Shown here piece after piece: positions 2,006 to 62,644 of a DNA stretch of 64,000 nt. Position numbers and translations under genes: made by a program. This stretch comes from Macrostomum lignano. Its lineage: Eukaryota. The notes below the pieces were generated by a model, which did not search any database, had not been told where the DNA came from, and saw only the letters and a program-made list of their open reading frames with translations. Numbering within the stretch: position 1 is the stretch's first letter; the number at the start of each line of letters is the position of its first letter. The stretch lies in NCBI GenBank assembly GCA_002269645.1, contig NIVC01000825.1, positions 124,001-188,000 of the forward strand. The letters run 5' to 3'.

Positions 2006-2330
2006 CAGATGCTTCAGTGGGTGACTCCACCCCTACCAGATGCTTCAGTGGGTGACTCCACCCCTACCAGATGCTTCAGTGGGTGACTCCACCCCTACCA
2101 GATGCTTCAGTGGGTGACTCCACCCCTACCAGATGCTTCAGTGGGTGACTCCACCCCTACCAGATGCTTCAGTAGGTGACTACACCCCTACCAGATGCTT
2201 CAGTGGGTGACTCCAACCCTACCGGATGCTTCAGTGGGTGACTCCACCCCTACCGGATGCTTCAGTGGGTGACCACCCCTACCGGATGCTTCAGTGGGTG
2301 ACTCTACCCCTACCGGATGCTTTATTGGGT
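2006..2330. repeat. Intronic minisatellite, 31 bp unit x ~10 (CAGATGCTTCAGTGGGTGACTCCACCCCTAC)
   Basis: Head-to-tail copies with no spacers. Confidence 0.95.
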
Positions 2331-5598: not shown

Positions 5599-6332
5599 TG
5601 ATTAGGGCGATTCTCTGTGCTGGATTAGGGCGATTCTCTGTGCTACATTAGGGCGATTCTCTGTGCTGGATTAGGGCGATTATCTATGCTGGATTTGGGC
5701 GATTCTCTATGCTGGATTAGGGCGATTATCTATGCTGATTTGGGCGATTCTCTATGCTGGATTAGGGCGATTCTCTGTGCTACATTAGGGCGATTCTCTG
5801 TGCTACATTAGGGCGATTCTCTGTGCTACATTAGGGCGATTCTCTGTGCTACATTAGGGCGATTCTCTGTGCTGGATTAGGGCGATTCTCTCTGCTGGAT
5901 TAGGGCGATTCTCTGGGTGGATTAGGGCGATTCTCTGGGTGGATTAGGGCGATTATCTGTGCTGGATTTGGGCGATTCTCTATGCTGGATTAGGGCGATT
6001 CTCTGGGTGGATTAGGGCGATTCTCTGGGTGGATTAGGGCGATTCTCTGGGTGGATTAGGGCGATTCTCTGTGCTGGATTAGGGCGATTCTCTTTGCTGG
6101 ATTAGGGCGATTCCCTATGCTGGATGAGGGCGATTCTCTTTGCTGGATTAGGGCGATTCCCTATGCTGGAATGCTGGATTAGGGCGATTCTCTATGCTGG
6201 ATTAGGGCGATTCTCTATGCTGGATGAGGGCGATTCTCTATGCTGGATGAGGGCGATTCTCTATGCTGGATGAGGGCGATTCTCTATGCTGGATGAGGGC
6301 GATTCCCTGTGCTGGATTAGGGGCGATTCTCT
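5599..6332. repeat. Intronic minisatellite, 23 bp unit (TTAGGGCGATTCTCTGTGCTGGA)
   Basis: About 30 tandem copies; shares the core AGGGCGATTCT with array 3195-4618. Confidence 0.95.
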
Positions 6333-15735: not shown

Positions 15736-17841
15736 AAGATTCACATAAATATAAATTTCCGTCCCAATTGCTCATTGCATGGACGCCGCAAAAAAGGAGG
15801 GCACTGATATATTCCTGCACGGTCACGAGTGCGGGAATGACATCTGCACGAGTGCGCGCTAGCGCACGAGTGCACGATGTCCTTCACGCACGAGTGAACG
15901 TGAAGGAATTCCATTGTCGGATGATTCATCGTGCAGGAATGCACAAAACCGTGCAGGAATGCATTTCTGCGCCTAATGCTTTTTCAGTGAGATTTTACCA
16001 TAGACATCCATTCCTGCACGCAAAAGAGTGCAAGAATGCCATTCTTGCATGGGAAATCAGCCGACAATGCAGATTAAAGAGATTGTAAAAAAGTTTTTAT
16101 ATTCTATGGTTAACATTGTGCCAAAAAATATTGAAATGACAGAAGCTCGAGTCATACTGGTTGTATTCATCTTTTTAATCATACTTCCCTAACTTGTACT
16201 TGAGTAGTCCTCGGCTCATACTTTAGCATGTACACATGTAATTTTTATTCTTTAGTAAAACTAAATTTCATCGAACTACTCACAGTAGTAAATTTGAGCA
16301 TGCATACCCCTATGTGTACAAGTTGTAAAATAAAAAAGTTACCGAGACTTGTTTACGTTTACACATTCGTTTATTTGCTTGTTGTATGAAAATAAGTAAA
16401 TAGTAAAAAATCAATGAAGAAAGCGAATGTCGAGTTTTTACAAAATGGAAATAATTTCTTTATATAGAAATTAGATTAATTCAATGGGAAAGAGATGACA
16501 TGTACCTATAGATCAGCAGGTGTAGTATTAAATTAAAGATTTAATTTAAATCCTGGTAGGGCATATGGAATTAAGCAAAAGCATCAACACGTATTTAGCA
16601 TTACAGGTATAAGTAAGGCGCAGAATGATAAATGAAAGTTTTAAATTACTTTGTATTTCGACTGTTTAGTGCTGAGCTTAAAGTTTTAAGCTTTTTGGTT
16701 TTACAGATACGGAAGCTACAAGTAGCCGAAGTAAAATGATTTGAATTATTAGTAAATTAATATAGTGTATCAAGAGTAACAAAAAATCATTACACAATTT
16801 CGAAATTAGAAAGATGCGACTAAAAGCCCTACTTTTTCACTACAGCTGACTAAATTAATTGTAGCAAAGATGTGTAATATTTTACGCGATTACAACAATC
16901 AAATAGTGCAAACAATCACCATAGTGAGAAAAATCGTCACAAAATCTCCCCTCCCGACCCAATCGCCAGTGTATTCAGTTTAGGCGTCAACAAAAAACAA
17001 GCAATATTCCATGCTTCACTATAATTGTGAACGCATCAATCTCAGCTTCGATTTAGATTTAGCAGATGTGCATCTCAACGAAGACCTCGCGTGACTTGAA
17101 GACACCCCAGGCGTTGTTCTTCGTAGCCTCAATCTCCGACTCGATGGCGACCTCCATGGGACTGTCGGCGCTGTAGCCGGAGTCCACGGAAGCATCCGAC
17201 TGTCGCCGTTTGCGCTTCTCCTTCTGCTGGTAGTATGGCGACGTGTGCGGCTCCTGCAGCTTAGGGATCTCGACCATCTGGGGAACGCTAACGCAAGCCA
17301 TTAGTGTTGAACGTTGAGAAACTGTGATAATACAAGTGCTAACGCCTGAAGCCTGAATCGGGAGGGGAGTAATTTGTGCGAATTTCAATCGTCAGGAACC
17401 ACAGAACTTAGCTCGGGAGCACCTTCGCTTCTTTACTTGACTTGAAGAATTGTAAGCAAGAACAGAGAATTCGTAGTTGGTTGTCAGTTGACAGAAAATC
17501 ACTGTGCGCATTCACAGTCTGCTGAGATAGGAAAAAGAAAAAGGGGCTTAGATTAGCGATATCTTTGAACCACAGTTTTATATGCAAAAGCAATCGAAAA
17601 GGAGTGGCCAGGGTGAACGAAGCCCTGCCCTAGCAGTCCAAAAGTTCGCAAAATGTACATCCACAGTAGAGCTTGTACGTTAACTGCATAGGAATAGGGC
17701 ATACAGTACATTAGTCCTTGTAAAGAATTGTAAGTGGAAAAAGTTCGACCCCTGCTTGCATGGGTAAACTGCATGACGAAGTCCAAGGTCGATGCACGCT
17801 TCTTTAGGATTTTATAGTACGCGTGATCCGACGTAGGCAAC

Positions 17842-17861
17842 GCCTCCGTGGCGCAATAGGC

Positions 17862-17898
<37 letters not shown>

Positions 17899-17915
17899 GA
17901 GCCCACCCGGGGGCG
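17842..17915 (+). tRNA. tRNA-Asn (GTT)
   Basis: Acceptor stem GCCTCCG/CGGGGGC, A-box TGGCGCAATAGG, anticodon loop CTGTTAA, B-box GGTTCGAGCCC, T5 terminator 6 nt downstream. Confidence 0.95.
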
Positions 17916-19113
17916 TTCACTTTTTGACTGATAATTTCTTTAGACTTACGCTTTTTATGCTAATTGTTATAGTTACACATACGCTTAAGAACCAGCTTCA
18001 AATTTACAGAAAGCACCAACTGTTTTTACTCTGTGATATGTTATGTGTAGACAGAGACCGATATGTGTAGAAAGTTATTTTCTCCGTTCCAATAAATGAG
18101 AAAAGATAAAGTATGCCACTAGTATGCAGATAGAAGTTTTACCTTTTCAGACGTTTTTATTTCAAAAAATTACAAAATAATGCTCCTGATTTTTAATGTA
18201 TGATAATTGGTAATAAAATAAATCTTTGTTTCATCTAAATCTACAAAAACGTTAGAAAGGTTTTGAGCCCCATTTTTTTTAATATTCTAAAGCAAACTAC
18301 TGTAAGTAGACTTACTACCTTGTTTCATTTTATCGGAAACGAAAAAAATGGTGGTGCAAGCCATTTGAAATGCGCCGGATCACGCGGAGATAAAAGAATT
18401 GGAACTTGTATTCTGTCTGTATAAAATATAATTGCTTTAATAGCTAATTAATTAATATATAAATAAATCAAAGCTATATACGAAAGCTATATATGTGAAA
18501 GAAAAAAAGATTTGTTCGCTTTCCTGAGTTTAACTAAAAGCTTCCATCTCACCCTGCCTTGCCCATTTGATTCTGGCTGAGGGAGGCCATTTAGAGGCAA
18601 ATGGTCTTAAATTTATTGATTATTGATTATTGATTGATTGGACAGCAAGAACATAATGCTATATTCTCAGCCTCTCAGCTGCTAGCAGTCAGTCTGGAAC
18701 AGAGGTTTTCAAGCGCTCCGAATTTGATGTTTTTCTTGTCAATTAAAATTTCAACTAAAGAATCATCGGTGAGTTGCAAGAGCAGTGATCTGATTGTTCA
18801 AAGAATTGTATCATACTTTTTTAGCATTCGAATATCGACACAATTTTATGATTTTAATGCAAGTCAGTACAAGATAGGTCACTTAGATTAATTAAAAAGT
18901 TATTTTGCACCACAATGCTACGCGTGCTTGGTCATTCGTGACTGAGTATGCTTCAAAATGTATGCTTCACTCATCAACATGTAATTTATTGAGTTTATTA
19001 TTGCAGATTGAACGCATTGAAATAACCATTAAAGAATCAAGCTTATTAAACCGAGGAAAATTAATACTCTAGACATTTTAGTACAGAAAATTTGGGTGAT
19101 TAATGCTTTAAAC

Positions 19114-31248: not shown

Positions 31249-31680
31249 AAGATCTGGGAGGCTGGCCCAGCAACTGAGGATCTGGGAGGCTGGCCCAGCA
31301 ACTGAGGATCTGGGAGGCTGGCCCAGCAACTGGGGATCTGGGAGGCTGGCCCAGCAACTGGGGATCTGGGAGGCTGGCACAGCAACTGAGGATCTGGGAA
31401 GCTGGCCCAGCAATTGAGGATCTGGGAAGCTGGCCCAGCAATTGAGGATCTGGGAGGCTGGCCCAGCAACTGAGGATCTGGGAGGCTGGCCCAGCAACTG
31501 GGGATCTGGGAGGCTGGCACAGCAACTGAGGATCTGGGAAGCTGGCCCAGCAATTGAGGATCTGGGAAGCTGGCCCAGCAATTGAGGATCTGGGAGGCTG
31601 GCCCAGCAACTGAGGATCTGGGAGGCTGGCCCAGCAACTGAGGATCTGGGAGGCTGGCCCAGCAACCGAGGATCTGGGAG
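31249..31680. repeat. Intronic minisatellite, 28 bp unit x ~15
   Basis: CTGAGGATCTGGGAGGCTGGCCCAGCAA in eIF3i intron 2. Confidence 0.95.
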
Positions 31681-36875: not shown

Positions 36876-36928
36876 CGAATTTCTTCATAGCAATAAAAGA
36901 CCGAAGGTTGCACCTGTCATCGATCATC

Positions 36929-38239
36929 ATGTGGTCAGAACGTGAGGCAGAAGAGCCTCAACGGCTAAGACTGAGAAATCGCGATATTTTACGTCCGACC
37001 GCTGCGGCTACGGCTTACACCTCTTCGTCAACCAGTGAGCCAGAATCCGAACGGGAGGCGAACTGGCGGCGCTATCAAGAGCTTCGTGACCTCGATCCTG
37101 TGCAAATCTCTGTCGATGAAGCACGCTGCTGTCAGTCTCAAGTGCCAGTGCCCCCCGGGCCCGGCCAACCATCAACGAACTACATGGAGACGGGAGACTC
37201 ATTCCTGCTGGACACCAGGCCTTCCGCGGCAGCTGCGGCAGCTGCAGTGACACATCCACCAAGACCTGTGCACCGTATGGCCGAACCATGGGCTCCGTTG
37301 CTCCAAGGCGGATCTCACCCTGGCGCTGACGCCCGCAACCTGTGCGCACCGGTATATCAACAAGCAATCCAGCTTCCGTCGGTGCCAAAGCCGGCGCCCT
37401 TCAACGGATCCGAACCGTTCGATGACTTTCTGGGTCGAGTGTCTTCGTATTTAAGCCGGCACCAAGGACTGAGTGACTACAGCAAGATCAACACGCTCAG
37501 CAGTTACCTGGGACCAGCATTCGCTACCTACGAGGTCTGGCTCTACCAACTGTGCGCGCAGCATGGACAGCCCGTTGGGACTTCACTGCAGTTCCTGCCA
37601 GGTGCCCGCTATGAAGATCTCCTGCAGCACCTTCGCGCTCGTCATGGCGGTGCCACCAGCACTGCGCTACTTCGGCGCGAGCTTCACAGCCGGTGCCGGG
37701 GCAGGGACGAGAGGTTCGAGGATTTTCTGACTGCCCTCCAGCGACTCGCGTTCAAGGCCTACCCAGAGCTCGGTGCTCAAGACTGTCGCCAGCAGACTGT
37801 GCTTGAGCGGTTCATTCAAGGGCTGAACGACAACTACGTGACGGAGCGGCTGCTTAATATGCAGCTCCCTCTTACTACACCGGATCAGGCCCTGCACTAT
37901 GCCCAGCAAGTGCGCGAGACCCGGCAGATAATGAATTCCCAGTCGCAGCACCACAGCGCCGAGGCGTCAGCTCCAGCGGCACCGGTTCAGTCAACACCGA
38001 CAGGAACCCGACCGCAGCATGGGCCACAGACGACACAACATCACCAGCCAGCGGCTCATCGAGCGCAGACAGCCCCAGCGCCACCATGGAGATCAGCTGA
38101 CGCCGCTGCACATCAACAGCAGCAGCCTAGGGCGGTGCCCATCTGCTACGGCTGCCATCAGCCTGGCCACATCCGCCGGAGGTGCCCAAACGCTGGGGGG
38201 GCTGGTCCAATGGGCCAGCACCGGCCCTCTCAGTACTAA
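36929..38239 (+). CDS. gag: Gypsy-1 gag (capsid plus CCHC knuckle)
   Basis: PKPAPFNGSEPFDDFL capsid motif; CYGCHQPGHIRRRC. Confidence 0.92.
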   Translation: MWSEREAEEPQRLRLRNRDILRPTAAATAYTSSSTSEPESEREANWRRYQELRDLDPVQISVDEARCCQSQVPVPPGPGQPSTNYMETGDSFLLDTRPSAAAAAAAVTHPPRPVHRMAEPWAPLLQGGSHPGADARNLCAPVYQQAIQLPSVPKPAPFNGSEPFDDFLGRVSSYLSRHQGLSDYSKINTLSSYLGPAFATYEVWLYQLCAQHGQPVGTSLQFLPGARYEDLLQHLRARHGGATSTALLRRELHSRCRGRDERFEDFLTALQRLAFKAYPELGAQDCRQQTVLERFIQGLNDNYVTERLLNMQLPLTTPDQALHYAQQVRETRQIMNSQSQHHSAEASAPAAPVQSTPTGTRPQHGPQTTQHHQPAAHRAQTAPAPPWRSADAAAHQQQQPRAVPICYGCHQPGHIRRRCPNAGGAGPMGQHRPSQY

Positions 38240-41200
38240 GCAGTTCGGCCCAGCCCCCACGCCCCAGCTTCCAGCCCGACCAAGTGCGCTTCATCACCTC
38301 GCGCATGCTCAGAAAACGCCGGCCGTGCATGATCGACACCGGTGCCGAGATCTCCTGCATCAACGGCGACATCGTGCACTCGGCCAGGCTCAGGCGGCAG
38401 CTGAGACCCAGCTCAACAACCATCTATGGCGTGGGCGGCAATCAAGCAACAGTGTTGGGCGAAATTGAGATAAGTTTTTTTCTTGGTCCGCTTCATTTTC
38501 GACACAGATTCCTGGCAGTGACCTGCCTCAGCGCACCGGTAATTCTGGGCTGCGACTTCCTAAACAAATTTGACATTTCGATCCACCTGAGATCAGGAAT
38601 TCTCGAGTTTAACGGCCTCGGCGTCACCTTGCCAATGCGGACATCCAGGCAGGCGGCCCAGACTTGCAAGCTGGCAGCGGCGGCCACGGTTCGACTGCAG
38701 CCAGGCGATGGCTGGATCATTCCGGTGCGGCCAGCGAGCGCGGCAGCGTGGACGAACTCGGAGGCACCAGGCGTTGTCTGCGGCAGCAAGGCGGCCAAAG
38801 TGATGATCGGCCGCAGCGTGTCCAAGCTGGTTGACCACGGAATGGGGGTTGCTGTCATCAACACCAGAGATGAGACAGTCGAGATCAAGGAGGGCGACAT
38901 CGTCGGCAACTTCAACCCGCTGTCTGGCCGAGCCCTGGCGCACCTGCAAGCCGGAGGATCTGGTGATGCCAGCGAGGCAGATCCGACTACTGCAACGACC
39001 TGGCAGGACGAGGTGTAAATCGCCGATGACATCCCAACCGAGGAGCGGCAGCAAGTCGAACGCCTTCTGCTGGAGTTCAGTGACGTATTCGCGAGCCCCA
39101 GCAACCCAGGCCGCACCCAATTGTTAAAGCACGAGATCGACACAGGCAACGCCAGGCCAATTCGCCAAGGACTGCGGCGCCTGGCTCCCACAGCGATCGC
39201 ACAGCAGAAGGAGCTGGTCAACGAGATGCTGGCAAAGGGAGTCGTCCGACCATCGTCATCACCTTGGGCATCTCCGATAGTTCTGGTTCGCAAGAAGGAC
39301 GGGTCGGCCAGATTTTGCTTGGACTACCGCCTGCTGAACGCGGTGACCAAGCCCGATGCCTTCCCGATGCCCCGCATCGATGACACTCTGGATGCCCTCG
39401 AAGGAAACAGCTACTTCTCAGCGCTGGATCTCGAAAGTGGCTACTGGCAAGTCGAGATGAATGACCGAGACAAGGAGAAGACGGCATTTGTGTGCCATGA
39501 AGGCCTGTTTGAATTCAACGTGATGCCGTTCGGACTACGGAATGCACCAGCCACCTTTCAGCGGCTCATGCAGCTGGTGCTCCGGGGGCTGACGTGGCAG
39601 GCCTGTCTGGTGTTCATTGACGACGTCATCGTGATGGGCCAGACCATCGGCCAGCACAACGATCGGCTGCGTTCAGTTCTGGAGCGACTGCGCGAGTTTA
39701 ACCTGCGCCTCAAGCCGTCAAAGTGCCGATTTGCAAATACCAGCATGTTAGTCCTGGGCCACCGCGTCAGCAAGACCGGCATCACCGTCGATGAGGGCAA
39801 AACCGCGGCTGTGCGAGACTGGCCGGTGCCCCGGAGCTCGAAGGACGTCAAGAGCTTCCTCGGCATGACCTCCTACTACCGAAGATTTGTGCGCGAATAC
39901 GCCAATATCGCCGAGCCTCTGCGCCGCCTTACACTGCCTACGCCCTTCGAGTGGACGCCAGAAGCCGAGGCGGCCTTCAACCAGCTGAAGCAAGCGCTGC
40001 TGTCAGCTCCGATCCTGGCGTTCCCGGACATGAGCGAGTCGGGCTCCGAATTCATCCTCGACACCGACGCAAGTGACTGCGCAATCGGCGCGGTGCTGTC
40101 GCAAGTGCAGGCGAGCGAAGAGCGGGTTATCGCCTACGCCAGCCGCGCCCTGTCAAGAGCTGAGCGCAACTACTGCGTGACGCGACGCGAGCTCCTGGCT
40201 GTTGTCGAGTTTGTTAAGAAGTTCCGGAGCTACATGCTGCCGCGCGCCTTCACCGTTCGAGTGGATCACCAGGCGCTCACCTATCTGCTGGCATTCAAAG
40301 AGCCCGAAGGCCAGCTGGCCAGATGGCTGCAGCTGCTCGATGAGTTCAACTTCAAGGTCGTCTTTCGCCGAGGCCGCCAACACGGCAACGCAGACGCCCT
40401 CTCTCGGCGAGAGCAAAAGTGCACCAGCCAGTGTCGAGTCTGTCGGCCAGGGACGACAGCGGTGGCGCCAGCCGAGACTTCAACAGCCGCCTGCCAGACG
40501 GAGCCGGCGGTCGAGGCGCCAGTGCCAATCGCGGAGCCTGCTGGCCGGGTCGACACAGTCAGAGTCAACTCCGTGCAAACCAACGCAGCGACATCAGCGC
40601 CGGCTACCTCTGCGGCTGCCCAGACCAACGCCGAGCCGGAACGTCAGGGCACCTCAAGGAGGAAGCAGCAGCTTCAACCGCGGCCAAGCGAGAGCGAGGA
40701 CTCCAGCGAAGACGAAATCAGCGACGAGGCCATTCAGGAAGGCGACGCGCTGTCAGATGCGTCTCAGTCACTGCGTGAACTGCAGCTCCGTGATCCAGAC
40801 ATCGGCCCGGTGTTTCGCCTGCTGTCCAACGGCAAGACAAGGTTCAGCGCCAGCAGACGTGACCGACTGTCGCCTGAGAGTCTAATTCTGGCACAGAAGA
40901 TCGGCGACCTGTGTTTCGTCGACGGCGCCCTGAACAAGCTGGTGAAGCCCAAGCCTGTGCCTGTGATTCCGCGCTGCAGACAGGAGGAGTTCATCGAGGA
41001 GGTCCATGAGCTTGGGCATCTGGGCGAGGACAAGACCTTGGCAGCCCTCAAGCAGCGTTGCTACTGGCCGAAAATGGCGGAGAGCGTTCGCCTAGCGGTC
41101 AGGTCCTGCCAAGTGTGCCAGCGCGCTAAGACACCGAGTCAGCGCCGAGCTCCACTGCAGACTATGGCCAGTGGATTTCCTATGCAGCGCGTGGGCATCA

Positions 41201-42120
41201 ACGTGGTCAAAGTTGGACTGTCACGGCGGGGAAACGATCGGCTGCTCACCATTGTCGACTACTTCACCAAGTGGGTCGAGCTGGTGCCACTCCCCGACGA
41301 GAAAGCGGCCACCATCGCCAAGGCACTGTTCGACAACTGGGTGACGCGTTTCGGAGCCCCGCACATTCTGCACTCCGACCGTGGCAAGGCCGTGGACGGA
41401 AAGGTCATCAGGAGCCTGTGCCGGCTGCTGGAGATTCAGAAGACGCGGACATCCGGCTACCATCCGCAGTGCGACGGCCTAGTAGAAAGGTTCCACCGCA
41501 CTCTGCACCAGATGCTCCGCTGCCACCTGCAGTCAGTTCAGCCGGAGGACTGGGAAGAAGTGCTGCCGCATTGTCTCTTGGCCTACCGCAGCAGCGTCAA
41601 TGCTACAACCGGGTTTACTCCTCACTGCCTGCTGACTGGCCGGGAAATGACGCTTCCAGTTGACGTCGTCTACCGGCCACCGGAGCCGCCAATGACAGTC
41701 GGCCAGTTCGCCGCCAACAACCGCGACCAGCTGCTTCGCGCCTACGACTCCGTGCGGCGATCGATGGCGACAGCACAACGACGCCAGCGGCGGTACTACG
41801 ACCGTAAGGCCAAGCGGTGCAGATTCCGGGTCGGCGACCTCGTATGGGTTTTCGTTCCGCCGTCGGCGCTTTCAAGGACGACTGGACTGGCTCCGAAACA
41901 CCAGGCGCCCTGGACCGGCCCGTTCCTGGTGCTGCAGCGAACGTCGCCGGTGAACTACCTGGTTCGTCCTATCGATTACAAGGACGGCGACACCGGTCGG
42001 GTGGTCCACGCAAACAAGCTGAAACGTGCGCACCAGCCCCGCGCTCCCGACCCGGCGCGGAGTGAGGCGACCAGCGACTGCAGCAGCGAAGTTCTTGACG
42101 ATGGCTGGGTCCTAGTGTGA
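38185..42120 (+). pseudogene. pol: Gypsy-1 pol (PR, RT, RNase H, integrase) in the -1 frame to gag, with in-frame TAA at 39016-39018 and a D>N change in the integrase
   Basis: MIDTGAEIS (PR), FIDDV (RT), LDTDAS (RH), HELGH...CQVC (IN zinc finger), RVGIN/SD/VE; the PR ORF and RT ORF are in the same frame. Confidence 0.9.
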
Positions 42121-45432: not shown

Positions 45433-46203
45433 TAGACGGCCGTTAATCACGGGAAACAGTGAAAAATCCACAAATCTGGGGGTCAGAACACTTCTCCCAG
45501 ACTTAGTGTCGCCTGTCTAGACTGTTGGAGATCAATACGTCTCGAACCCAGACAGTCTGACCTTCAAATACGCGTAAAGAATCCAAAATTAGGTTCCTAA
45601 GGGAAGTACATTGGGTATCTAACAGAATTAATAGTAATGGCATAAATTAGTATAGAACTTAAGCCTAGATGGGAGAATGGAAAGAAGTTCCTAAGCTAGC
45701 CTACTGACAGTAGGGGAAAAGCGCATCGAAGCAAAATGTGCGGTTCTGAGATTGAAAAAAGGTGCGTCCTCATCAGTAGGTATATGTAGCTGGTCACTTG
45801 GGCTTACAAATTTACCTCGGGTATCATGGAATTCAATAAGGGGAGCTGCATTGTTTTACCAAGGAATAATCTGGCCAGGACAGGGCCGGCAGACCGTCAC
45901 ACAAGCGATCGGAAGAGGGACAATGAGTCGGACCAGTGGGTAGTAAACGCAGGACCACCGGGTGGAAACAGACAAGAGCACATGGGGATTAACAAAAATT
46001 TAACAGCAGACGCACGCATTTACATCGAAAGTAAAACAAAAACCATCAGTGAAAAATAAGGTAGTAATTCACTTCTGGGAAATTTTTTACGCTGACTGGA
46101 GGGCATTCTTAAACCTCTCAGGGGAGGCGGAGGCCTACCGTTTTATTAAATTGAATTTTTCACCAATTTTAATTTCGTTAATTACATAAATCGTTGATAT
46201 AAA

Positions 46204-49200
46204 TGTGGTGAGCGAGAGACAAGTCAGTCAGGTTTAGTCCAACAAACAAAATTCAAACCCTCACCCAAAGGGTGGAGCTATTCTTATATTTACTCGAGAA
46301 CGCATGTACATATACAAACAGAGCGCGCATGTACAACGGATCCCTTGACCCCCAAACACCGACTAGCAAAACAACCCAGTGAGTAAACTCACTTTACAAC
46401 ATTCACCCTCCTTAACAGTCACTAATTCCCTTCACAGCTGGCAATCAATGCGTCACGACCTGGCCGTACCACAACGGTGGTGCCCGCAGTCGCGTACTGC
46501 GCCGCAGCTCCGCGTCGGCCTCAACGGTCGCCGGCGGCGGGTCCGTCGGGCCTTCTGGCGCTGCCGGCTCTGCAGCCACTGGCGGCTGTGGCGGCATTGC
46601 CGTTGCCGAAGTCGTGCTGGCACCCTCGGGCTCCGCATGAGGCATACAGAGGCTGGTGTGCCACCTTGAGCCGTCCTCTAACCTGACGATCGTCGGGCTG
46701 ATGATGTCGCTGACCCGTAGAGGTGGTGACACGTGGCTCTGCAGCTTGCCTCGCATCCGCGGAGATCGCACTCGCACCAGGTCGCCGACCCGGAATTGGC
46801 GCGGCGGCTGCCGGGATCTGTTGAGCCGCTTGAACTGCCGTCTTTGCCGCTCCTGGATCTGATCGGCCAGTGGGTGCTCTCGAGTCGCTCGCTTCGGCTG
46901 CAGCGTCCACAGCGGCGTGGTGATCTTGCGGCCGAGCATCAGCTCCGCTGGCGTCACGCCGGTCAGCGCATGCGGTGTCGATCGGTACGCCCACAGGATG
47001 GACTGCACCGCTTCCAGGAACGAGTAGCCGTCTTGAAGGTGGCTCTTCAAGCCCTCTTTGACTACGCGGTTCAGGCGCTCCACTCCGGAATTTCCTTGAG
47101 GGTGGTAGAACGGAGTCTGACGATGATTGATGCCGTACGCCTTTAGGAAGTCGTTGAACTCCTGGGAGATGAACTGGGGTCCTCCATCGGTGGTGATTAC
47201 GCGCGGAATGCCCCAGCGACAAAACAGCGCCGTGAGACTCTTGATGATAGTCGCAGACGTCGCTGAAGAGAGGCAGACCAGTTCGGGCCACTTTGAATGC
47301 AGGTCATGTACACCGAGTATGAAACGGCAGTTCTGTGGTGCACCCTCGTGCAGCTCTCCGAACAAGTCGATCTGCAGCTCTGTCCACGGTTCCTTCGGCC
47401 ACTTGGTCGGGGTCAGCACTGTCCGATGCGGCTTGAAGCTCTTCTCACTGATGATGCACGCAGAGCAGCTGCTGACGAACCTCTCGATGTCGCTGTCCAT
47501 TTTGGGCCACCAGGCGGTGTCTCGGCAGTGATGCTTGGTCCTGCTGACTCCCTTGTGACCTTGATGCGCTAAGTCGAGCACTCGCTGGCGCAGTTCTTCC
47601 GGTATGACGGCACGAGTTCCCATGGCCAAGCACCTGCCGTTGCTCCAAACAGTCAGCTCGTTCCTAACACTCCAGTAGGGCAGCAGGCGCTCATCGAGCT
47701 TTTTCTTGTCTGGCCAACCGGAAACTGTGAACTCTGCGACTCGTGCCAGGAGCTCGTCCTTTGACGTTGCCTCCGCCAGCTCGTCCTCGGTGACCACGGT
47801 CAGCGCCTCGGCCAGGAGCACTCTTTGGACTTCCAGACCGTCTGTTTCATCGCCTTCCGTCGGCTCGGCCGTGTCCTGGCAGCGCGACAGAAAGTCGGGC
47901 ACGATGTTCTTGGCACCCGGGACGTACTTGACGGTGAAGGAGTAGTTTAACAAACGATCAGCCCAGCGATGCAGTCTGAGTGGCCGGTGTCCGCTCCCAG
48001 ATGATGACAGCAGCGTGGTGAGAGCCTGGTGATCGGTGTGGAGCTCGAACCGTCGGCCGTAAAGGAAGAAGTTCCAGCGCTCACAGGCGAAGATGCAGGC
48101 CAGGGCTTCCCTCTCGCTCGCCGAGTAGCGGCGCTCCGTAGCACTCAGAGTTCGGCTCGCAAAGGCAACCGGGCGCCACTGGCCGTCGGAGTCTTGCTGG
48201 AGGAGCATCGCACCAAGAGCTGATGCTGAGCTGTCGCAGCTGACGATGATCGGCTGATCTGCGTCGAAAAACTTGAGGCAGGGTGGCTTGCACACTCCTG
48301 TCTTCAGCTGCTCAAAAGCCTGCTGGCACTCACTGGTCCACTTCCACGACTCGTCCTTCCTCAGCAGTTTCATTAGGGGCTCCGCCGTGCTGGAGAGGCT
48401 GGGAATGAAGTTGCCGAAGTACTTCACGACGCCTAGAAACGCAGCCACTTCCTTGGTGTTCGTTGGCGGCTGTACCTTCTCGATAGCTTCGACGTGTGAC
48501 TGCAACGGGCGGACTCCAGAAGCGCTCAGCTCATAGCCTAGGAAGTTGACCTTGTCCTGGCGCCAGGTGCACTTGGCCGTATTGATAGTCACGTTGTGCG
48601 TCATCAGAGCTTGCAGCACCTTGAACAGGCGCTTGTCGTGCTCTTCTCTTGATGCCGCGTGCACTACGATGTCGTCAATAAAGTGCACTGCGCCTTTGAT
48701 GCCACTGAGGATCTTAGCCATCACCTTCTGGAACGCAGCCGGTGCACTACTCAGGCCGAAGCACACCCTCCGATATCGATATAGGCCTCGCTCCGTCACG
48801 AACGTGGTCAGATTTCTGCAGTCCTCAGACAACTCCAGTTGCAGGTAAGACGAATTCAGGTCCAACTTGGAGAAGCATCGTGACCCGGCAAACTCGGCGG
48901 AGAGCTCCTCAAAGGTCGGAAGTGGGTATCTGTCCGGTATGATGCTCTTGTTTGGGCCTCTCAGGTCGTTGCAGATCCGGATCGAGCCGTTCGCCTTTGG
49001 CACCACGACTAGGTTTGACACCCAGTCTGAGGCGTCCACCTCCTCGATGATGCCTTGCTGCAGCAGCTGGTCGATCTCCTTTTGAACCGAATCTCTTAGG
49101 CTGAGCGGCACTCTGCGCAACGGTTGAGCAGTCGGTTGCACCGCGGGGTTGACTCGCGGCCTGTGCTGAAATCCTTTGATGTGTCCGAGTCCCTGAGTCA

Positions 49201-50811
49201 ACTGGTCGAACCGGCCTGGGATCCAGTCAGGCAGGGCTCTGGTGCCGACTGTCTGCACTCGCTCACCGTCTGCAGTGACGATCCACAGTCCCAGCTGATC
49301 CATGAGGTCGCACCCCAGGATGTCAGATCCGGTATTGACCACGCTAAGGTTGACGTAAGGCACTACTTTGTCCTTGAGCTGCACCGAGGTCAGGATGTCA
49401 CCAAGCACGCCGATCTTGCTGCCGTTGAAAGCGACCAGCTTCCGTGATGACGCCTGCAGGGGCACGTTGGACAGAAGTCTATTGTACGTCGTCTTGGTGA
49501 TGATGGAGACTCGCGAACCGGAGTCAACGAGCAGCTTGACAGGCCTCCCGTTTAGCAGCACTTCGCAGTGCTTGCTTGCTGCCGCAGCTGTCGACACAGT
49601 GCAGATGGAGTACTCATCCTGAAGCTGTCGCACTCGGTTGCCGCTCCTGCAGACTCTGGCGAAGTGCCCGCGCTTGCCGCAGGACTTGCACTTCTGCCCC
49701 TTTGCTGGGCAGGTCTGTCCACCGACATGCGCCGCTGAGCCACAGTAGCCGCAGCTCCGGCCGTCGGTTGTCGACTTCAGTGCCTCATGCTGTCTTGCCA
49801 CTGCTCCACTGTTCTTGGCCTTGCTGATCTGCTGGACTCCACACGAGCTGTTTGGGTCTGTGTGGCTGCCTCCCTTGATGGCCTGGGCCTCCAGCAGTCC
49901 AGTTTCCAGTCGCTCCGCCAACTGCACAGCTGTCGCCAAGGTCAGCTCCGGCTCCATAAGCAGTCGCTCCCTGATGTGGTTGCTGAGCACTTTCTCGACG
50001 AGCTGGTCACGCAGCATCTCCTCCTGGAAGGTCTTGAAGTCGCAGTTCGAAGCCAGGTTTCGCAGCGCGGCAACGAAGTCGCTGATCTTTTCGCTCGGTC
50101 GCTGAGCTCTCTGTCGGAATCTGTGCCTCTCAGCAACTACGTTGACTTTGGGTCCGAAGTGCATGTCCAGGAGCTTCAGCGTGTCATCAACTGTTGATGG
50201 CGGTTGCTCTCCTTCCTCCTGATCGCTGCTGGCCTGTAGAGACATGTAGATGTTTTGTCCCTCTGCACCCAAACAGTGGATGAGCAACGCTTGTTTTCTT
50301 TGCTCCGGCAGATCGATGGCTCCCGATGCTAGCAGGTAATTGCTGAACATTGCTTTCCATCGGTTCCATTCAATCAGCGGTGCTCCAGCGGCTGGCAGAA
50401 ACGGCTGCGGTGGCGAAATGTTGACACTCATTCTGTTGGCTGCATCTCTGCTTGACTGTTGGGCTGCTGCTTGTTGGGACCCTCGCTGTGGGTCGCCCAT
50501 TGCACTTGCATTTGCGCCTTCTGTGCTGCTCATGACTTGGCAGATTTTAGAGTTCGCGCTTGTGCTGAATCACGCTGGCCCAAATCAATTGATTTCTCCG
50601 CGCGACGCCAAAATGTGGTGAGCGAGAGACAAGTCAGTCAGGTTTAGTCCAACAAACAAAATTCAAACCCTCACCCAAAGGGTGGAGCTATTCTTATATT
50701 TACTCGAGAACGCATGTACATATACAAACAGAGCGCGCATGTACAACGGATCCCTTGACCCCCAAACACCGACTAGCAAAACAACCCAGTGAGTAAACTC
50801 ACTTTACAACA
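46204..50811 (-). mobile_element. Full-length intact Ty3/Gypsy (Mag-like) retrotransposon (Gypsy-2), 5-bp TSD ATAAA
   Basis: Identical 198-bp LTRs (46204-46401, 50614-50811); PBS TGGCGTCGCGCGGAGAA; PPT AAGGAGGGTGAA; TSD at 46199-46203 and 50812-50816. Confidence 0.97.
46445..50533 (-). CDS. gag-pol: Gypsy-2 single gag-pol polyprotein, 1362 aa
   Basis: Tandem Cys/His knuckles, LVDSGS (PR), FIDD (RT), CDSS (RH), HQGH...CSAC, ID/TD/VE integrase triad; no stops. Confidence 0.95.
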   Translation of the reverse strand: MSSTEGANASAMGDPQRGSQQAAAQQSSRDAANRMSVNISPPQPFLPAAGAPLIEWNRWKAMFSNYLLASGAIDLPEQRKQALLIHCLGAEGQNIYMSLQASSDQEEGEQPPSTVDDTLKLLDMHFGPKVNVVAERHRFRQRAQRPSEKISDFVAALRNLASNCDFKTFQEEMLRDQLVEKVLSNHIRERLLMEPELTLATAVQLAERLETGLLEAQAIKGGSHTDPNSSCGVQQISKAKNSGAVARQHEALKSTTDGRSCGYCGSAAHVGGQTCPAKGQKCKSCGKRGHFARVCRSGNRVRQLQDEYSICTVSTAAAASKHCEVLLNGRPVKLLVDSGSRVSIITKTTYNRLLSNVPLQASSRKLVAFNGSKIGVLGDILTSVQLKDKVVPYVNLSVVNTGSDILGCDLMDQLGLWIVTADGERVQTVGTRALPDWIPGRFDQLTQGLGHIKGFQHRPRVNPAVQPTAQPLRRVPLSLRDSVQKEIDQLLQQGIIEEVDASDWVSNLVVVPKANGSIRICNDLRGPNKSIIPDRYPLPTFEELSAEFAGSRCFSKLDLNSSYLQLELSEDCRNLTTFVTERGLYRYRRVCFGLSSAPAAFQKVMAKILSGIKGAVHFIDDIVVHAASREEHDKRLFKVLQALMTHNVTINTAKCTWRQDKVNFLGYELSASGVRPLQSHVEAIEKVQPPTNTKEVAAFLGVVKYFGNFIPSLSSTAEPLMKLLRKDESWKWTSECQQAFEQLKTGVCKPPCLKFFDADQPIIVSCDSSASALGAMLLQQDSDGQWRPVAFASRTLSATERRYSASEREALACIFACERWNFFLYGRRFELHTDHQALTTLLSSSGSGHRPLRLHRWADRLLNYSFTVKYVPGAKNIVPDFLSRCQDTAEPTEGDETDGLEVQRVLLAEALTVVTEDELAEATSKDELLARVAEFTVSGWPDKKKLDERLLPYWSVRNELTVWSNGRCLAMGTRAVIPEELRQRVLDLAHQGHKGVSRTKHHCRDTAWWPKMDSDIERFVSSCSACIISEKSFKPHRTVLTPTKWPKEPWTELQIDLFGELHEGAPQNCRFILGVHDLHSKWPELVCLSSATSATIIKSLTALFCRWGIPRVITTDGGPQFISQEFNDFLKAYGINHRQTPFYHPQGNSGVERLNRVVKEGLKSHLQDGYSFLEAVQSILWAYRSTPHALTGVTPAELMLGRKITTPLWTLQPKRATREHPLADQIQERQRRQFKRLNRSRQPPRQFRVGDLVRVRSPRMRGKLQSHVSPPLRVSDIISPTIVRLEDGSRWHTSLCMPHAEPEGASTTSATAMPPQPPVAAEPAAPEGPTDPPPATVEADAELRRSTRLRAPPLWYGQVVTH

Positions 50812-51016
50812 ATAAATATATGCAATCGAAGCAAAGAGGCACGATCGTTGCTTCTAGATTCTTATATTTATAAGATTTAGTATCTTAGAAAAGTATCAAC
50901 TATTATGAGCAGCAGTAACGTATCTTACTTGACTTAGCTGCAGGGGGCTCCGTGCGTCCGGAAACAGCGAGGAGGCGTTGCCGCCCATTTCGCTAACCCC
51001 TGGCGACCACGGGCAG

Positions 51017-54719
<3,703 letters not shown>

Positions 54720-54720
<1 letters not shown>

Positions 54721-56230
54721 GAATTCCACGAGTGGTCCGCGCAGCTTCCTGCTGGCTCAAGGCGAGTTGTGCAGGAGAGCTGCCTCTTCTGCCTCGCCGA
54801 TAGCTCCAGGCTCCAGCTCCATGGGCTCCTCCCGGATGGATTCCATGGTCGAGGGCGAGGTCGCTACCTGGGCGGCATTCTCGCTCTCGGCCCGGTTTTC
54901 CGGGGGGGGGGGCCGCAGTGGTGACACTGGGCTGGGGGTGGCTGCGGTTGGGGGCCTTGGCGGTGTCCAGCAGCTGCTTCGCGCGCTGAGTCAGACCAGA
55001 GCGGATAGTGTTCCGGGCGGGTTTCCGGCCCTTTCCACGTCCGCCTGTTGCTGCAGCTTTCGCGGCTTTCCCTCTGACAGGGTCCACGTCCTCGGAGGGG
55101 TCGTGACGACCGGGAGCTTCTTTTCCTGGGCGTTTCCGCCCGGCAGAGCCCCCGACTGCCCGCTTACGCTTCTCCGGGGGCGGTGGGCGGGTGGCGTCAG
55201 ACTCAAAGCTAAAGAGCTGAATCTGCAACAGCCCGACAGAGATGATGGACATGTCCGGGTAGCGGAGCATCCAGCTATCCGACAGTCCAAGAATAGCCGT
55301 GAAACCGTCTCCGCCTGGCTTGGAGATGGTCTCGTGAACTACGACACCGTTGGCCGGTAGCTCCGGGTTGGAAGCCACTAGCAGGTGACGTAGCTCGTCT
55401 GCCTTGGTGATGCAGCTGCGAGCCGGGATCCAGGCACGGTGCCGGTGTGTCCGGGGTCGCTCGTCCTCCCTGTAGATGAACAGGTTCTCCAGCTCCGTAC
55501 CCCAGTCGAAGGTTTTCAGCAGCTCGAGGAGCTGCTGTCCTGACTGGCTGTCGGTGGGCTGGATATAGAGGGCTTGGTCCTCGACTTTCGTCTTTTGGAC
55601 TCGAATAGTAGTGCCGCTCAAGGCCATCTTGACCAGGTGGGAGTCCAACCTGCGCCAGATAAGGTCAAGCTGTTCGGCCGTAAGAGGCGTCTCCTGGCCT
55701 TGGATAACCAGGGCCGGCTGCCTTTTGGCCATAGCCGCGTAGGTTCGCTTCGGCTTTGTGGTTTGGCCAGCGCCCCCCGCTTTGGATCCCTCCACGGCCG
55801 TGGGAGCTTCCACACGGGCAGAGGTCCGGTCACGGGAGGGGCCAGCCGCACCAGGAGCTTCAGCGGCACCTGACGCATCAGACCGGCGCGCGGGGTCCAC
55901 GCCCTTGTCGGATGTCGGCTCCTCCGCGGGGTTCGCAGAGTTACCGGCACCCTCCTCAGAGGTGGCCGGAGGGGCGGCTTTCGCATTCCTCCGTTCCTCC
56001 GCTTTGCGCTGGAGAAAGGCTTTGTAGCGAGCAATGCTACGGGCCTTCTTTTTCGAAATCTGAGGTCCGCTGTCTTGTCCAGCCACTCCGGTATTATCCT
56101 GAGCGGCGGCAGCGGCAGATTGAGAGGCACCGGGGGTTCCGGTGTTGCGAATGTCCGGCTGGGCCGCGGTGCCAACCTCGGTTGGTGCTCCAGCAGCCTC
56201 GGACGTGTCGGAGGTAAATGAATACTCCAT
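54720..56230 (-). CDS. LINE ORF1 (as assembled, runs in frame into the APE start)
   Basis: ATG at 56230; basic low-complexity N-terminus, TYAAMAK motif, and a central domain similar in style to Loa-clade ORF1 (inference). Confidence 0.7.
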
Positions 56231-56699
56231 GAGTCGCTGAAAGGCGAGTGGGGACTAAAGGTGAGAAGCCGCTGGGCCGTAACCCCAAACCCAACAACCA
56301 GGCCAAGAGGTAGCGACCGGGGGGTGGCCCAGCCCCGTACCAGCCCGACCGCTAGCAACCGAGAAACTCCCCGGCTAAGAGCCCGGCTTGGAAAAACCAG
56401 AGGCCGAACCAAAGGACCAACAGCACGGTACTACACTGGGCCCTTGAGGGAAGCAGGAGGACTGCCTCCGGAGCCTGCGGACTGGCCGCATACCCTGTTA
56501 AGGTCAGAGGGTGGTACCTGTTCCTCAGAGCCATGGCCAGAGGTACCTGATACGCACAGGTGCACTTCCGGGCGGAGCCCGTACCCAACTTGGTCAAAAG
56601 GCCACGGATGGGTTGCCGCCGCCGGAGCCCAGTCAGTCCAGCAGCCCTAGAGCTGCCCTAGAGCAGCCCTAGGCCACGGATGGGTTGCCGCCGCCGGAG

Positions 56700-56895
56700 C
56701 CCAGTCAGTCCAGCAGCCCTAGAACACATGCGGGGCGTGAACCCCTGGGTCGGCTTGCGAGTCAGCTTGGAGAGAGTTCTCCTGCCATTCCTGCACCAGA
56801 ATAGAGGGGGTGCAGGTGTGTAGGATCGCAGACCTTAGCCCGTAGGCCTAATCTGTCTCATGCTACACAGGCGTGCTGTACCCGCCATTGCATGC
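56700..56895 (-). ncRNA. HDV-like (CPEB3-type) self-cleaving ribozyme at the LINE 5' end
   Basis: P1 GCAUGC/GCAUGU with G.U at position 1; P2 CCCAG/CUGGG; P3 GGG/CCC; L3 UUCACGC; J1/4 GU; P4 UCUAG/CUGGA; J4/2 CUGA. G1 is the element boundary defined by the TSD. Confidence 0.75.
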
Positions 56896-56929
56896 GCACT
56901 AACGTATCATTTAATTAACTCAACTGTCG

Positions 56930-57660
56930 AGAGGGCGCCCCAGCGACAACTGGACAAGCTCGTTGCTGTTGCGGCGAGTGTCGGCCTGGTGGTAAACACG
57001 CTGAAGACCGTCGTGCTCTGCGTGCCGGACGACATCGAGACTGCGATTTTGTGCCGAGGCACTGATGGACAGGCGACAGAGCTTCTGCGTTTTCCGCAGT
57101 TCGTCTACCTCAGCGGCTGGTTCCTGGCGTCCGCGAGGATTTGCGGCGTCGCCGCGGGCTTGCCTGGGCTGCCTTTCGTTCTGGGAGGGCAGTCCTGCAG
57201 TCAGAGGCCTTAGCTGACCGCCAAAGGGCGGCGTTGTTCCAGGCGGTGATCGAGACCGTCCTGCTATACAACGCCGAGACCTGGACGCTGACGGAGTCGC
57301 TCGAGCAGCAACTTGACGCGGCGAACGCTGGCCTGCTGCGCGCCGCCTTCATGCAAGCTCGGCTACGAGCGAGTGACCAACGCGGCTTTGTATCACCGCG
57401 CCGGCCTGGTCCGTACAAACGACCTGCTGCGCTGTTGGCGACTGCAGCTGGCAGGCCACATCATCCGCACCGAGTCGTACTGCAAATGCACAGAGCCGGT
57501 GCAGGATGCTGCTCCTAACTCTGCAGGCACCCTACCGGCGGGGGCAGTCGCGCAATCGGCGTTTCGTCGACTGCCTGCTGGCTGACGCCGGCTCTACGTA
57601 TTCTGCCGGTGGCGTGGCGTTCTTTCGCGACCTGGCCTTGAAGCGCGCCCCGTGACGCTA
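56930..57660 (+). pseudogene. 5'-truncated, frameshifted RTE-like LINE fragment (RT C-terminus)
   Basis: QRQLDKL...GLVVNTLKTVVL, FVYL, VLLYNAETWTLT, RLQLAGHIIR. Confidence 0.8.
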
Positions 57661-61555: not shown

Positions 61556-61962
61556 CTATATGTTTAATAATTTGGCGGAGGGGGGCGGGTGACAGCAGGG
61601 AATATGCGTCAGTTTATTAGTAGCATGAATGGCGTTTTTTACTTGAATTTGTTATTTGGCAAAGAAACTGTGTTCTGCAGTTTATTCAGGGAGTTAGATA
61701 AGTACTTTATATGCTAAATTAAAGCAAACATTATCTTCAATTAAGATAAGGAAACTGACATTGAAATATCAAAATTAACACAGCTATGGAATTTATGAGC
61801 AAAATGCTTCGATGCACCTATAAATAGATGAGTAATTTAATTTGAGCCAATTTGAGTAAATTTGAAGGCAAAATTAAGCAAAGAAATGCAGGAAAATTAT
61901 GAATACAATACAATGGCGGGGAAGAAAAACAGTGCCAATTTTATGATGAATACAATGAAACT

Positions 61963-62375
61963 GAGTGACAATGACAGTGAGTGACAATGACAGTGAGTGA
62001 CAATGACAGTGAGTGACAATGACAGTTAGTGACAATGACAGTGAGTGACAATGACAGTGAGTGACAATGACAGTGAGTGACAATGACAGTGAGTGACAAT
62101 GACAGTGAGTGACAATGACAGTGAGTGACAATGACAGTGAGTGACAATGACATTGAGTGACAATGACATTGAGTGACAATGACAGTGAGTGACAATGACA
62201 GTGAGTGACAATGACATTGAGTGACAATGACAGTGAGTGACAATGACAGTGAGTGACAATGACAGTGAGTGACAATGACAGTGAGTGACAATGACATTGA
62301 GTGACAATGACAGTGAGTGACAATGACAGTGAGTGACAATGACAGTGAGTGACAATGACAGTGAGTGACAATGCT
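61963..62375. repeat. Intronic minisatellite, 16 bp unit x ~26 (GACAGTGAGTGACAAT)
   Basis: Tandem copies. Confidence 0.95.
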
Positions 62376-62644
62376 AGTGAGACTGAAATTTAGTGTGAGA
62401 GTGATATTGAAATTCAGAATTTCGAGTGACAATAGTCGAGATGTTTGAGTGACAATTGGTGTGAGTGTGAAAATGGCAGTAAGAGTGACAATAGCACTAA
62501 GTGTGACCAAATGAGTGACATTGAGAGTGAAAATAGAACTGAACAAATCAAATCAACCTTCAAAACCTAGAGTTGGCGGAAGCAAAAGTCATTGTCGGGA
62601 ATTAGGCAAGGTAATAAATAATAAGTGAAGAGCATTCAACTCAC

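Follow-up and report, generated by a model that had tools for sequence, protein, structure and literature searches.

A probable HDV-like self-cleaving ribozyme at the 5′ end of a LINE family in Macrostomum

A decayed LINE on the minus strand of the window (i.e. the whole 64,000-nt stretch of Macrostomum lignano DNA analyzed here) opens with a segment that can be arranged in the fold of an HDV-like ribozyme. This raises the question of whether the element's 5′ end is set by self-cleavage of its own transcript. A first, sequence-only reading had placed an HDV-like self-cleaving ribozyme, its J1/2 large and structured, exactly at the first base of the element. We found the motif, including a large and stable J1/2, at the first base as defined by the TSD, and both its architecture and its start are kept in a divergent relative, here called L001. 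Judged from these comparisons, this LINE family of Macrostomum probably encodes, at its 5′ end, an HDV-like self-cleaving ribozyme of the genuine 5′-processing type.

The host element and its first base

The LINE is full-length but decayed and extends over 5,971 bp (50925–56895, minus strand), as determined from its TSD bounds, Pfam matches and tblastn. It comprises a 665-nt 5′UTR, ORF1 and a frameshifted ORF2 encoding APE, RT and RNase H, followed by roughly 90 nt of 3′UTR, which terminate in ...GCTAAGTCAAGTAA and lack poly(A). ORF1 is a 625-aa reading frame (54353–56230, minus strand) with no Pfam domain; through decay, its frame has become continuous with the beginning of the APE domain. 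The remnants of ORF2 (51017–54369, minus strand) consist of APE (54369–53266), RT (53043–52168) and RNase H (52270–51017). Matches to the Pfam families APE, RVT_1 and RNase_H were located in different frames, and the tblastn matches of ORF1 and ORF2 of L001, which cover 56251–51041 of the window, were likewise spread over several frames. As ORF2 is broken across frames, the window copy is a dead element.

The Pfam domain order APE-RT-RNase H presumably assigns the element to those LINEs that carry an RNase H domain (I, Loa, Nimb, Ingi and Tad1). All named homologues of ORF1 were Macrostomum lignano gene models, with identities of up to 90%; the family is therefore multi-copy in this species or a close relative. 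In one distant relative, ORF1 carries DUF4780.

The boundaries of the element follow from its TSD. The upstream copy, GATACGTTAGTGC (56896–56908, minus strand), adjoins G1 of the putative ribozyme, and the downstream copy, GATACGTTACTGC (50912–50924, minus strand), directly follows the ORF2 stop and the 3′UTR of about 90 nt. The 13-bp TSD described in the sequence-only reading is thus real and sets the element start exactly at G56895, but it is imperfect, with 12 of 13 positions matching. Since the TSD cannot be extended at either end, the element corresponds to 56895–50925, and its first base, G56895, is also the first base of P1. A Ty3/Gypsy LTR pair is located nearby. An internal empty site was sought in this pair and none was found, the LINE being 100 bp outside the LTR.

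Core fold and peripheral domain of the window copy

All core motifs listed in the sequence-only reading were recovered from the minus strand at the positions given there, in the nested strand order of a double pseudoknot (P1, J1/2, P2, P3, L3, P3′, P1′, J1/4, P4, J4/2, P2′; 56895–56700). The 5′ strand of P1 (GCAUGC, 56890–56895), with predicted cleavage 5′ of G56895, pairs with GCAUGU (56726–56731). The resulting helix has 6 bp, within the 6–7 bp looked for, and carries the G.U wobble (G56895–U56726) at its base, where cleavage would occur. Within the initial 216 nt, GCATG[CT] occurs at P1 and P1′ and nowhere else. The 5′ strand of P2 (CCCAG, 56745–56749) faces CUGGG (56700–56704), and the helix is formed in the MFE structure. 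P3 (GGG/CCC) and its loop L3 (UUCACGC) occupy 56732–56744; in L3, both partners of the conserved reverse-wobble pair, U at position 1 and G at position 6, are retained. Of these two, the G has been described as important in HDV-like ribozymes (PMC3774820). Within J1/4 (GU, 56724–56725), the G pairs with the C at position 3 of L3 and forms a P1.1 of 1 bp. P4 is a hairpin of 5 bp, one U.G included (UCUAG-GGCUG-CUGGA, 56709–56723), and J4/2 (CUGA, 56705–56708) fits the consensus C-N-R-A, with C56708 as the candidate catalytic residue. Despite the dead ORF2, the putative ribozyme core of this copy is still canonical.

Two helices were added to those of the sequence-only reading. The first is an extension of P2, in which GCCG (56751–56754, minus strand) pairs with CGGC (56693–56696, minus strand) across a 1x3 internal loop; it was formed in the unconstrained MFE structure. 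The second closes J1/2, a peripheral domain of 140 nt with a multi-branch fold (56750–56889, minus strand). This closing helix of 6 bp joins GCGGGU (56885–56880) to ACUCGC (56762–56757), four nucleotides after P1 and 2–7 nt before P2 and its extension. Enclosed in the domain are a long hairpin (UGUGUAG.../...CUACACA, with the tip GCC-UACG-GGC) and the further hairpins CCUGCACC/GGUGCAGG and GGAGA/UCUCC. These three hairpins had already been proposed, and each was present in the unconstrained MFE structure. When folded alone, J1/2 had an MFE of -57.9 kcal/mol (z = -3.41), and none of 200 shuffles was as stable.

For the full RNA of 203 nt, the unconstrained MFE structure contained P2, the P2 extension and the J1/2 domain; the 5′ strand of P1 was single-stranded. 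The nested subset of the ribozyme fold reached -78.2 kcal/mol, to which the P1 duplex would add -6.6 kcal/mol, compared with -84.2 kcal/mol for the MFE structure. In these energy models, the ribozyme fold is roughly competitive with the unconstrained one.

From this arrangement we infer catalysis and co-transcriptional release as follows. A read-through transcript entering the element from upstream would fold co-transcriptionally; the first six bases of the element (P1) would pair with GCAUGU, which lies about 160 nt further downstream, and two coaxial stacks would be completed by P2, its extension, P3 and P4. The 140-nt J1/2 would form a closed multi-branch domain of its own, whose closing helix could keep P1 and P2 joined at their distal ends. 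C56708 in J4/2 would then catalyze scission immediately 5′ of G56895 and release an RNA with a 5′-OH on G1. Full-length target-primed reverse transcription of the released RNA would yield insertions that start exactly at G1 beside the TSD. In other words, the insertion would begin at G1 next to the TSD because the released RNA starts there.

Comparison with a divergent relative

The comparative evidence consists of two sequences, the window copy and L001. The latter is a Logan contig of 6,492 nt that represents a full-length relative with ORF1 and ORF2 intact; its identity to the window copy is 49–55% in ORF1 and about 68–71% in ORF2. The contig extends about 640 nt past the 3′ end of the element, yet opens at the homologous G (GCCTGCAATGGC against GCATGCAATGGC), as would be expected if a repeat boundary, or the 5′ end of an RNA, lay at this position. 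The predicted cleavage site therefore coincides with the 5′ boundary of the element in both copies, as given by the TSD in the window and by the contig start in L001. According to the sequence-only reading, copies starting well upstream or downstream of this G would have spoken against a ribozyme; among the copies compared (n=2), both start at it.

The core region of L001 (1–236) can barely be aligned with that of the window, yet architecture and order of the helices are kept. L001 displays P1 GCCUGC/GCAGGC, a J1/2 of about 164 nt, P2 CUCAGA/UCUGAG, P3 GGG/CCC, L3 UCUCCGU and a J1/4 of 6 nt (AGGCAA). These are followed by a P4 of 11 bp (UGCGCCCGGCC-AUCU-GGCCGGGCGUA), a G, CUGC and P2′, together with a P2 extension GCCG...CGGC. 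A 3-bp P3 and a 7–8-nt L3 with the U...G pair are thus found in both copies, and so is a P1.1 that joins L3 to the start of J1/4 (1 bp in the window, 2 bp in L001).

Several helices changed between the two copies in a manner that preserves pairing. From the window to L001, (i) the pair at position 3 of P1 changed from A-U to C-G; (ii) P1.1 changed from C-G to U-A (U3-A1) and gained a second pair (C2-G2); (iii) P2 displayed a double change from C-G to U-A and an added A-U pair; and (iv) the P4 helix was kept, with unrelated sequence and length. P3 and the U and G of L3 were invariant. Varying yet paired helices combined with fixed core residues are, as far as two sequences can indicate, the signature expected of a ribozyme. 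The P2 extension is also found in L001 in the arrangement GCCG-N...NNN-CGGC; as it is invariant, no covariation is derived from it. L001 departs from the canonical core in several respects. Its G1 pairs with C, so that G.U at position 1 of P1 is not uniform in the family, J1/4 has 6 nt, and an extra G precedes the candidate catalytic C. Furthermore, its J4/2 (G-CUGC) lacks the conserved A of C-N-R-A, to which CUGA of the window conforms. With regard to the covariation among family copies that the sequence-only reading had proposed to look for, compensatory changes were found in P1, P1.1 and P2 and the P4 helix was kept, in a comparison of two copies (n=2) whose core pair table was registered by hand, since the part with P4 and J4/2 is misaligned by MAFFT; L001 has G1-C and no A in J4/2.

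The peripheral domain is shared as well. Folded alone, J1/2 of L001 reached -83.3 kcal/mol (z = -2.15) and formed a closed multi-branch domain. In both copies, the closing helix starts four bases after P1 (GCGGGU/ACUCGC in the window, GCAGGG/CUCUGC in L001). The helix differs between them by two double and two single changes, all compensatory. A central J1/2 hairpin is also common to both, compensatory changes included. Positions in the J1/2 helices were 100% paired, compared with 34–48% for slid partners, the structure being derived from the same two sequences. By analogy, closed J1/2 domains with a common closing helix match the published "pinch" role (PMC4908430).

Searches for further relatives covered more distant sequences. 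The distant relatives L002–L004 and L125–L127 (31–37% ORF2 identity) contained no strict matches to the motif, and loose ones occurred at background rate. Exact-protein look-ups for the M. lignano UniRef models P0001 and P0003 and for ORF1 of the window returned no record. Protein searches with ORF2 and ORF1 of L001 revealed no additional close relatives with DNA, and P0008, otherwise the closest relative, has a 5′-truncated contig. A covariance model built from the 3′ core of the window alone had its best match in the UTR of L001 at the homologous start (8.3 bits, E=0.12), with the wrong 3′ half. Two other candidate pairings were discarded. The conserved AGCAUGA (RNA positions 32–38), considered as an alternative P1′, finds no complementarity in L001. 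A compact HDV-like candidate at 235–320 of L001 is a match of the loose descriptor at the chance rate (about 1.3/kb); its J4/2 is non-canonical, and the window does not retain its P2.

Parts of the 5′UTR are conserved in sequence and not merely in structure. The first 12 nt of the element are invariant between the window and L001, and the J1/2 block AGGCCnAnGGGCUAAGGUCUnCGAU is conserved despite about 50% divergence in ORF1. Judging from the two copies, conservation of this block is in excess of what a clamp or a ribozyme J1/2 appears to need, and it provides the basis for two further readings.

The first of these, which we consider unlikely, is that an internal RNA polymerase II promoter initiates transcription at G1, that the structured 5′UTR serves other ends, and that the HDV-like pairing is non-catalytic or vestigial. 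Other uses of the UTR along the same line, i.e. promoter elements, binding of the ORF1 or ORF2 protein, or cap-independent translation, seem similarly doubtful. Both conserved sequence segments would suit such a promoter, a contig start at G1 fits a transcription start equally well as a cleavage site, and the internal promoters of some LINEs start at the first base (PMC3774820). The non-canonical core (G1-C, no A in J4/2) also happens to belong to L001, the copy with intact ORFs. However, a promoter acting at the DNA level leaves unexplained the compensatory changes in P1 (A-U to C-G, about 160 nt apart), P1.1 and P2 as well as a P4 helix kept with unrelated sequence, and for either sequence, the full motif has an anchored chance probability of about 1e-4. 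By analogy with L1Tc of Trypanosoma cruzi, a promoter at G1 is plausible alongside a ribozyme, and the two readings are apparently not exclusive: the first 77 nt of L1Tc contain an HDV-like ribozyme that doubles as the internal promoter Pr77 (PMC3185411, PMC3383444).

Possibly, though with a low probability, J1/2 (140–164 nt) acts both as a folding clamp and as a second functional module inside the ribozyme. The invariant AGGCC-NANG-GGCUAAGGUCU-N-CGAU and the first 12 nt might then represent an internal promoter, a binding site for an element protein or an IRES-like element, a proposal that we make tentatively. If true, a single segment would join the definition of the 5′ end with transcription, translation or RNP assembly. 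L1Tc offers a model for the sequence-conserved J1/2 block, with the differences that its ribozyme is compact (77 nt), that its host is a protist, and that the module proposed here would be housed inside J1/2, unlike Pr77/L1TcRz of trypanosomes. When metagenomes were scanned with GGGCTAAGGTCTNCGAT, the conserved block of J1/2, at least 120 loci were returned, none with similarity in the UTR or in protein; for lack of both similarities, these matches were taken as chance.

Chance expectation and known ribozymes

The HDV-like ribozyme favored here has to be set against the frequency of such motifs in unrelated sequence. The canonical descriptor required G1.U, a 6-bp P1, a 3-bp Watson-Crick P3, a 5-bp P2 abutting P3, a P4 of at least 4 bp, an L3 of 7–8 nt, a J1/4 of 1–3 nt, C-N-R-A and a J1/2 of up to 220 nt. 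When the initial six bases were kept as P1 and the 490 nt that follow were subjected to dinucleotide shuffling, 1 of 20,000 shuffles completed this descriptor. A search of both strands with an HDV descriptor, as proposed in the sequence-only reading, returned 56895(-) and one weak site. A looser scanner, which required P1.1 and the L3 U...G and was loosened post hoc after inspection of L001 so as to accept it, had two matches on both strands of the window (128 kb), namely 56895(-) and 43550(-). In anchored shuffles, the same scanner with P1.1 and L3 was completed in 1 of 10,000 cases for the window and in 6 of 10,000 for L001. The match at 43550(-) is AT-rich, has no transposable-element context and was taken as chance. 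Given roughly one false match in 128 kb, we calculate a probability of the order of 1e-5 that such a match starts precisely on the base defined by the TSD. A loose descriptor lacking those constraints (J1/2 of up to 220 nt) found about 160 distinct starts on both strands, many of them in tandem repeats.

That a GC-rich, structured 5′UTR merely satisfies a permissive descriptor with a J1/2 of free length is very unlikely. Such a chance match would be in keeping with the many starts found by the loose descriptor, the second loose match in L001 at 235, the lack of Rfam support and the transfer of the covariance model to L001, which was not significant. It is opposed by the rarity of the canonical motif at the TSD-defined base, by the single other site in 128 kb that P1.1 and L3 constraints leave, and by an independent relative in which the architecture recurs at this position with altered helices, and which likewise starts at G1.

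Rfam models did not recognize the segment. At gathering score, no HDV-family match was found in the whole window, and at E<=10 no HDV, CPEB3, drz-Agam or related model matched the 400 nt of 56550–56950. The check with Infernal models put forward in the sequence-only reading was therefore negative at both thresholds. The sole Rfam matches were one tRNA and a sub-threshold NRF2_IRES, which lies on the opposite strand and was taken as chance. The HDV-family models of Rfam derive from compact ribozymes and are not known to cover a J1/2 of 140 nt, so that their silence is weak negative evidence.

A likeness to the mammalian CPEB3 ribozyme had been pointed out. CPEB3 has L3 UUCACGU, J1/4 GU and a single-pair P1.1, and L3 of the window differs from it in the last base only. 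The CPEB3 ribozyme is compact and intronic, with neither a J1/2 insert nor an association with a transposon; its Rfam model does not match the window. As L001 has a P1.1 of 2 bp and a different L3, the resemblance to CPEB3 is not a trait of the family.

Trimming of LINE transcripts at their 5′ end by HDV-like ribozymes is already known, as the sequence-only reading had stated for R2, RTE, L1Tc/ingi and baggins; such ribozymes cut the 5′ ends of R2, R4/Dong, RTE, baggins and L1Tc elements (PMC3774820, PMC6765202, PMC3185411). In later accounts (PMC6765202, PMC3774820) of the 2011 work on baggins, this element resembles the one described here in that the ribozyme is located at the extreme 5′ end, with the cut at the first base of the element, and in that it has a TSD, no target-site specificity and a presumed release from read-through transcripts. 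Compared by description only, the present case differs in its host, a macrostomid flatworm, and in an ORF1 that cannot be classified by Pfam. R2 ribozymes have a P1 of 6–7 bp, a P2 of at least 5 bp that is often long, a 3-bp P3, conserved U and G in L3, variable P4 and J1/4, and a J1/2 of 23 to >700 nt; in the silkmoth R2, activity requires part of J1/2, and a ribozyme has been predicted for R2 of the planarian Schmidtea (PMC3774820). R2 itself is site-specific (28S rDNA), with a single ORF, a restriction-like endonuclease, Pol I transcription and cleavage often upstream in the 28S, whereas the LINE of the window has an APE endonuclease, is dispersed, and is predicted to be cleaved at its own first base.

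The suggestion that the large-J1/2 variant may be undescribed did not hold, given the published range of J1/2 in R2 (PMC3774820) and the structured J1/2 (P1.2) of drz-Agam-2-1 from Anopheles, a characterized activating module (PMC4908430). In drz-Agam-2-1, the closing helix of J1/2 joins the ends of P1 and P2, as predicted here. In contrast to its single helix, J1/2 is multi-branch in this family, with 140–164 nt, and the Rfam drz-Agam models had no match. Among flatworms, Perere-3 LINEs of Schistosoma mansoni carry 5′ twister-variant ribozymes (PMC8501958). Perere-3 is likewise an APE-type flatworm LINE with a ribozyme (a predicted one in our case) defining its 5′ end, but the ribozyme class is twister instead of HDV-like, and its clade, RTE, is different from that of the LINE analyzed here.

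The architecture is thus not new; the host lineage and the element family appear to be. Our literature search found no paper combining HDV-like ribozymes with Macrostomum. If the ribozyme is confirmed, Macrostomum, a free-living flatworm tractable by transgenesis, would join the hosts of HDV-like 5′ processing, and an RNase H-bearing APE LINE family would be added to the users of these ribozymes. Together with Perere-3, this would mean that two or more classes of ribozyme have been taken up by flatworm LINEs to perform one and the same task. Confirmation would also provide a natural, large multi-branch J1/2 with a covarying closing helix for studies of activation by peripheral domains. The general picture of LINE biology is unchanged, and the finding is not surprising to a specialist. 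It is useful for experiments and for annotation, the ribozyme being an exact criterion for full-length copies in Macrostomum genomes.

A further feature of the window copy, absent from the sequence-only reading, is an exact duplicate of 53 nt (56599–56651, minus strand; blastn 100% over 53 nt) of the stretch 56723–56671. The duplicated stretch comprises P4, J4/2, P2′ and downstream sequence. It provides an alternative 3′ half, yields a second solution of the descriptor and was matched by the covariance model with 37.7 bits; L001 has a single copy. As a variant of the second-module reading, and as doubtfully as that reading itself, the tandem duplication of P4, J4/2 and P2′ might endow the window copy with two alternative 3′ halves. 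Extremely unlikely is a scenario in which the ribozyme is real in the family and the duplicate P4, J4/2 and P2′ compete, misfold the core and impair cleavage of this copy, as its two descriptor solutions, its otherwise decayed state and the single copy in L001 might suggest, since the proximal core is complete and should fold first during transcription, with the duplicate located downstream of all required parts.

Duplication and conservation in the LINE 5′ UTR

The predicted HDV-like ribozyme (56895-56700, minus strand) at the start of the decayed LINE overlaps a duplication. Within the 5′ UTR, one 53-nt segment occurs twice as exact copies (56723-56671 and 56651-56599, minus strand), separated by approximately 19 nt consisting of an 11-nt repeat, AGCAGCCCTAG, in three copies. 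This segment contains P4, J4/2, and P2′ together with downstream bases, and its exact duplication provides the window copy with two alternative ribozyme 3′ halves. The segment is single-copy in L001, a divergent full-length relative of the LINE.

Beyond the ribozyme, the 5′ UTR is also partly conserved between L001 (235-320) and the window (approximately 56630-56560, minus strand). Blocks common to both are (i) GGGUACnGGGCU...CCCGG and (ii) CACCUG...CAGGUACCUCU. Possibly, the conserved hairpins in this part of the 5′ UTR have a function of their own. A compact HDV-like pattern in the 235-320 region of L001 was a loose match and was judged to be due to chance.

Ends of the L001 contig

L001 (1-6492, Logan run ERR14788467) begins exactly at the first base of the element, but runs approximately 640 nt beyond the element's 3′ end (...GCTAAGTCAAAGTGA), with opposite-strand ORFs in that part. 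Such an asymmetry would be compatible with a transcript whose 5′ end is defined and which reads through at its 3′ end.

Neighbouring retrotransposons

A Ty3/Gypsy-type LTR retrotransposon (46201-50811, minus strand) starts 100 bp downstream of the LINE's target-site duplication. It carries an uninterrupted ORF of 1,362 aa encoding gag, protease, RT, RNase H, and integrase (46445-50533). Its two LTRs of 201 bp each (50811-50611 and 46401-46201) are 100% identical, indicating a very recent insertion. A second Ty3/Gypsy-type element (approximately 36900-42120, plus strand) comprises a protease ORF (38182-39018) and an RT-RNase H-integrase ORF (39121-42120).

A different LINE family is represented on the opposite strand by a 5′-truncated fragment (approximately 56925-57520, plus strand) with RT C-terminal-like ORFs (56860-57213 and 57141-57518), located approximately 17-30 bp upstream of the LINE that carries the predicted ribozyme. 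This fragment gave no Pfam match and no tblastn match to ORF2 of L001.

tRNA gene and tandem repeats

A tRNA-Asn(GUU) gene was detected at 17841-17916 on the plus strand (Rfam tRNA, 66.2 bits), with ARAGORN in agreement. At approximately 61870-62550, a minisatellite of THCHCHSLSLSLTVIV... units displays long repetitive ORFs when read on the minus strand. Start positions reported by the HDV-like descriptor scanner suggested further tandem arrays with spacings of approximately 23 nt (near 6105-6309, plus strand), 28 nt (near 31500-31668, plus strand), and 31 nt (near 2031-2155, minus strand).
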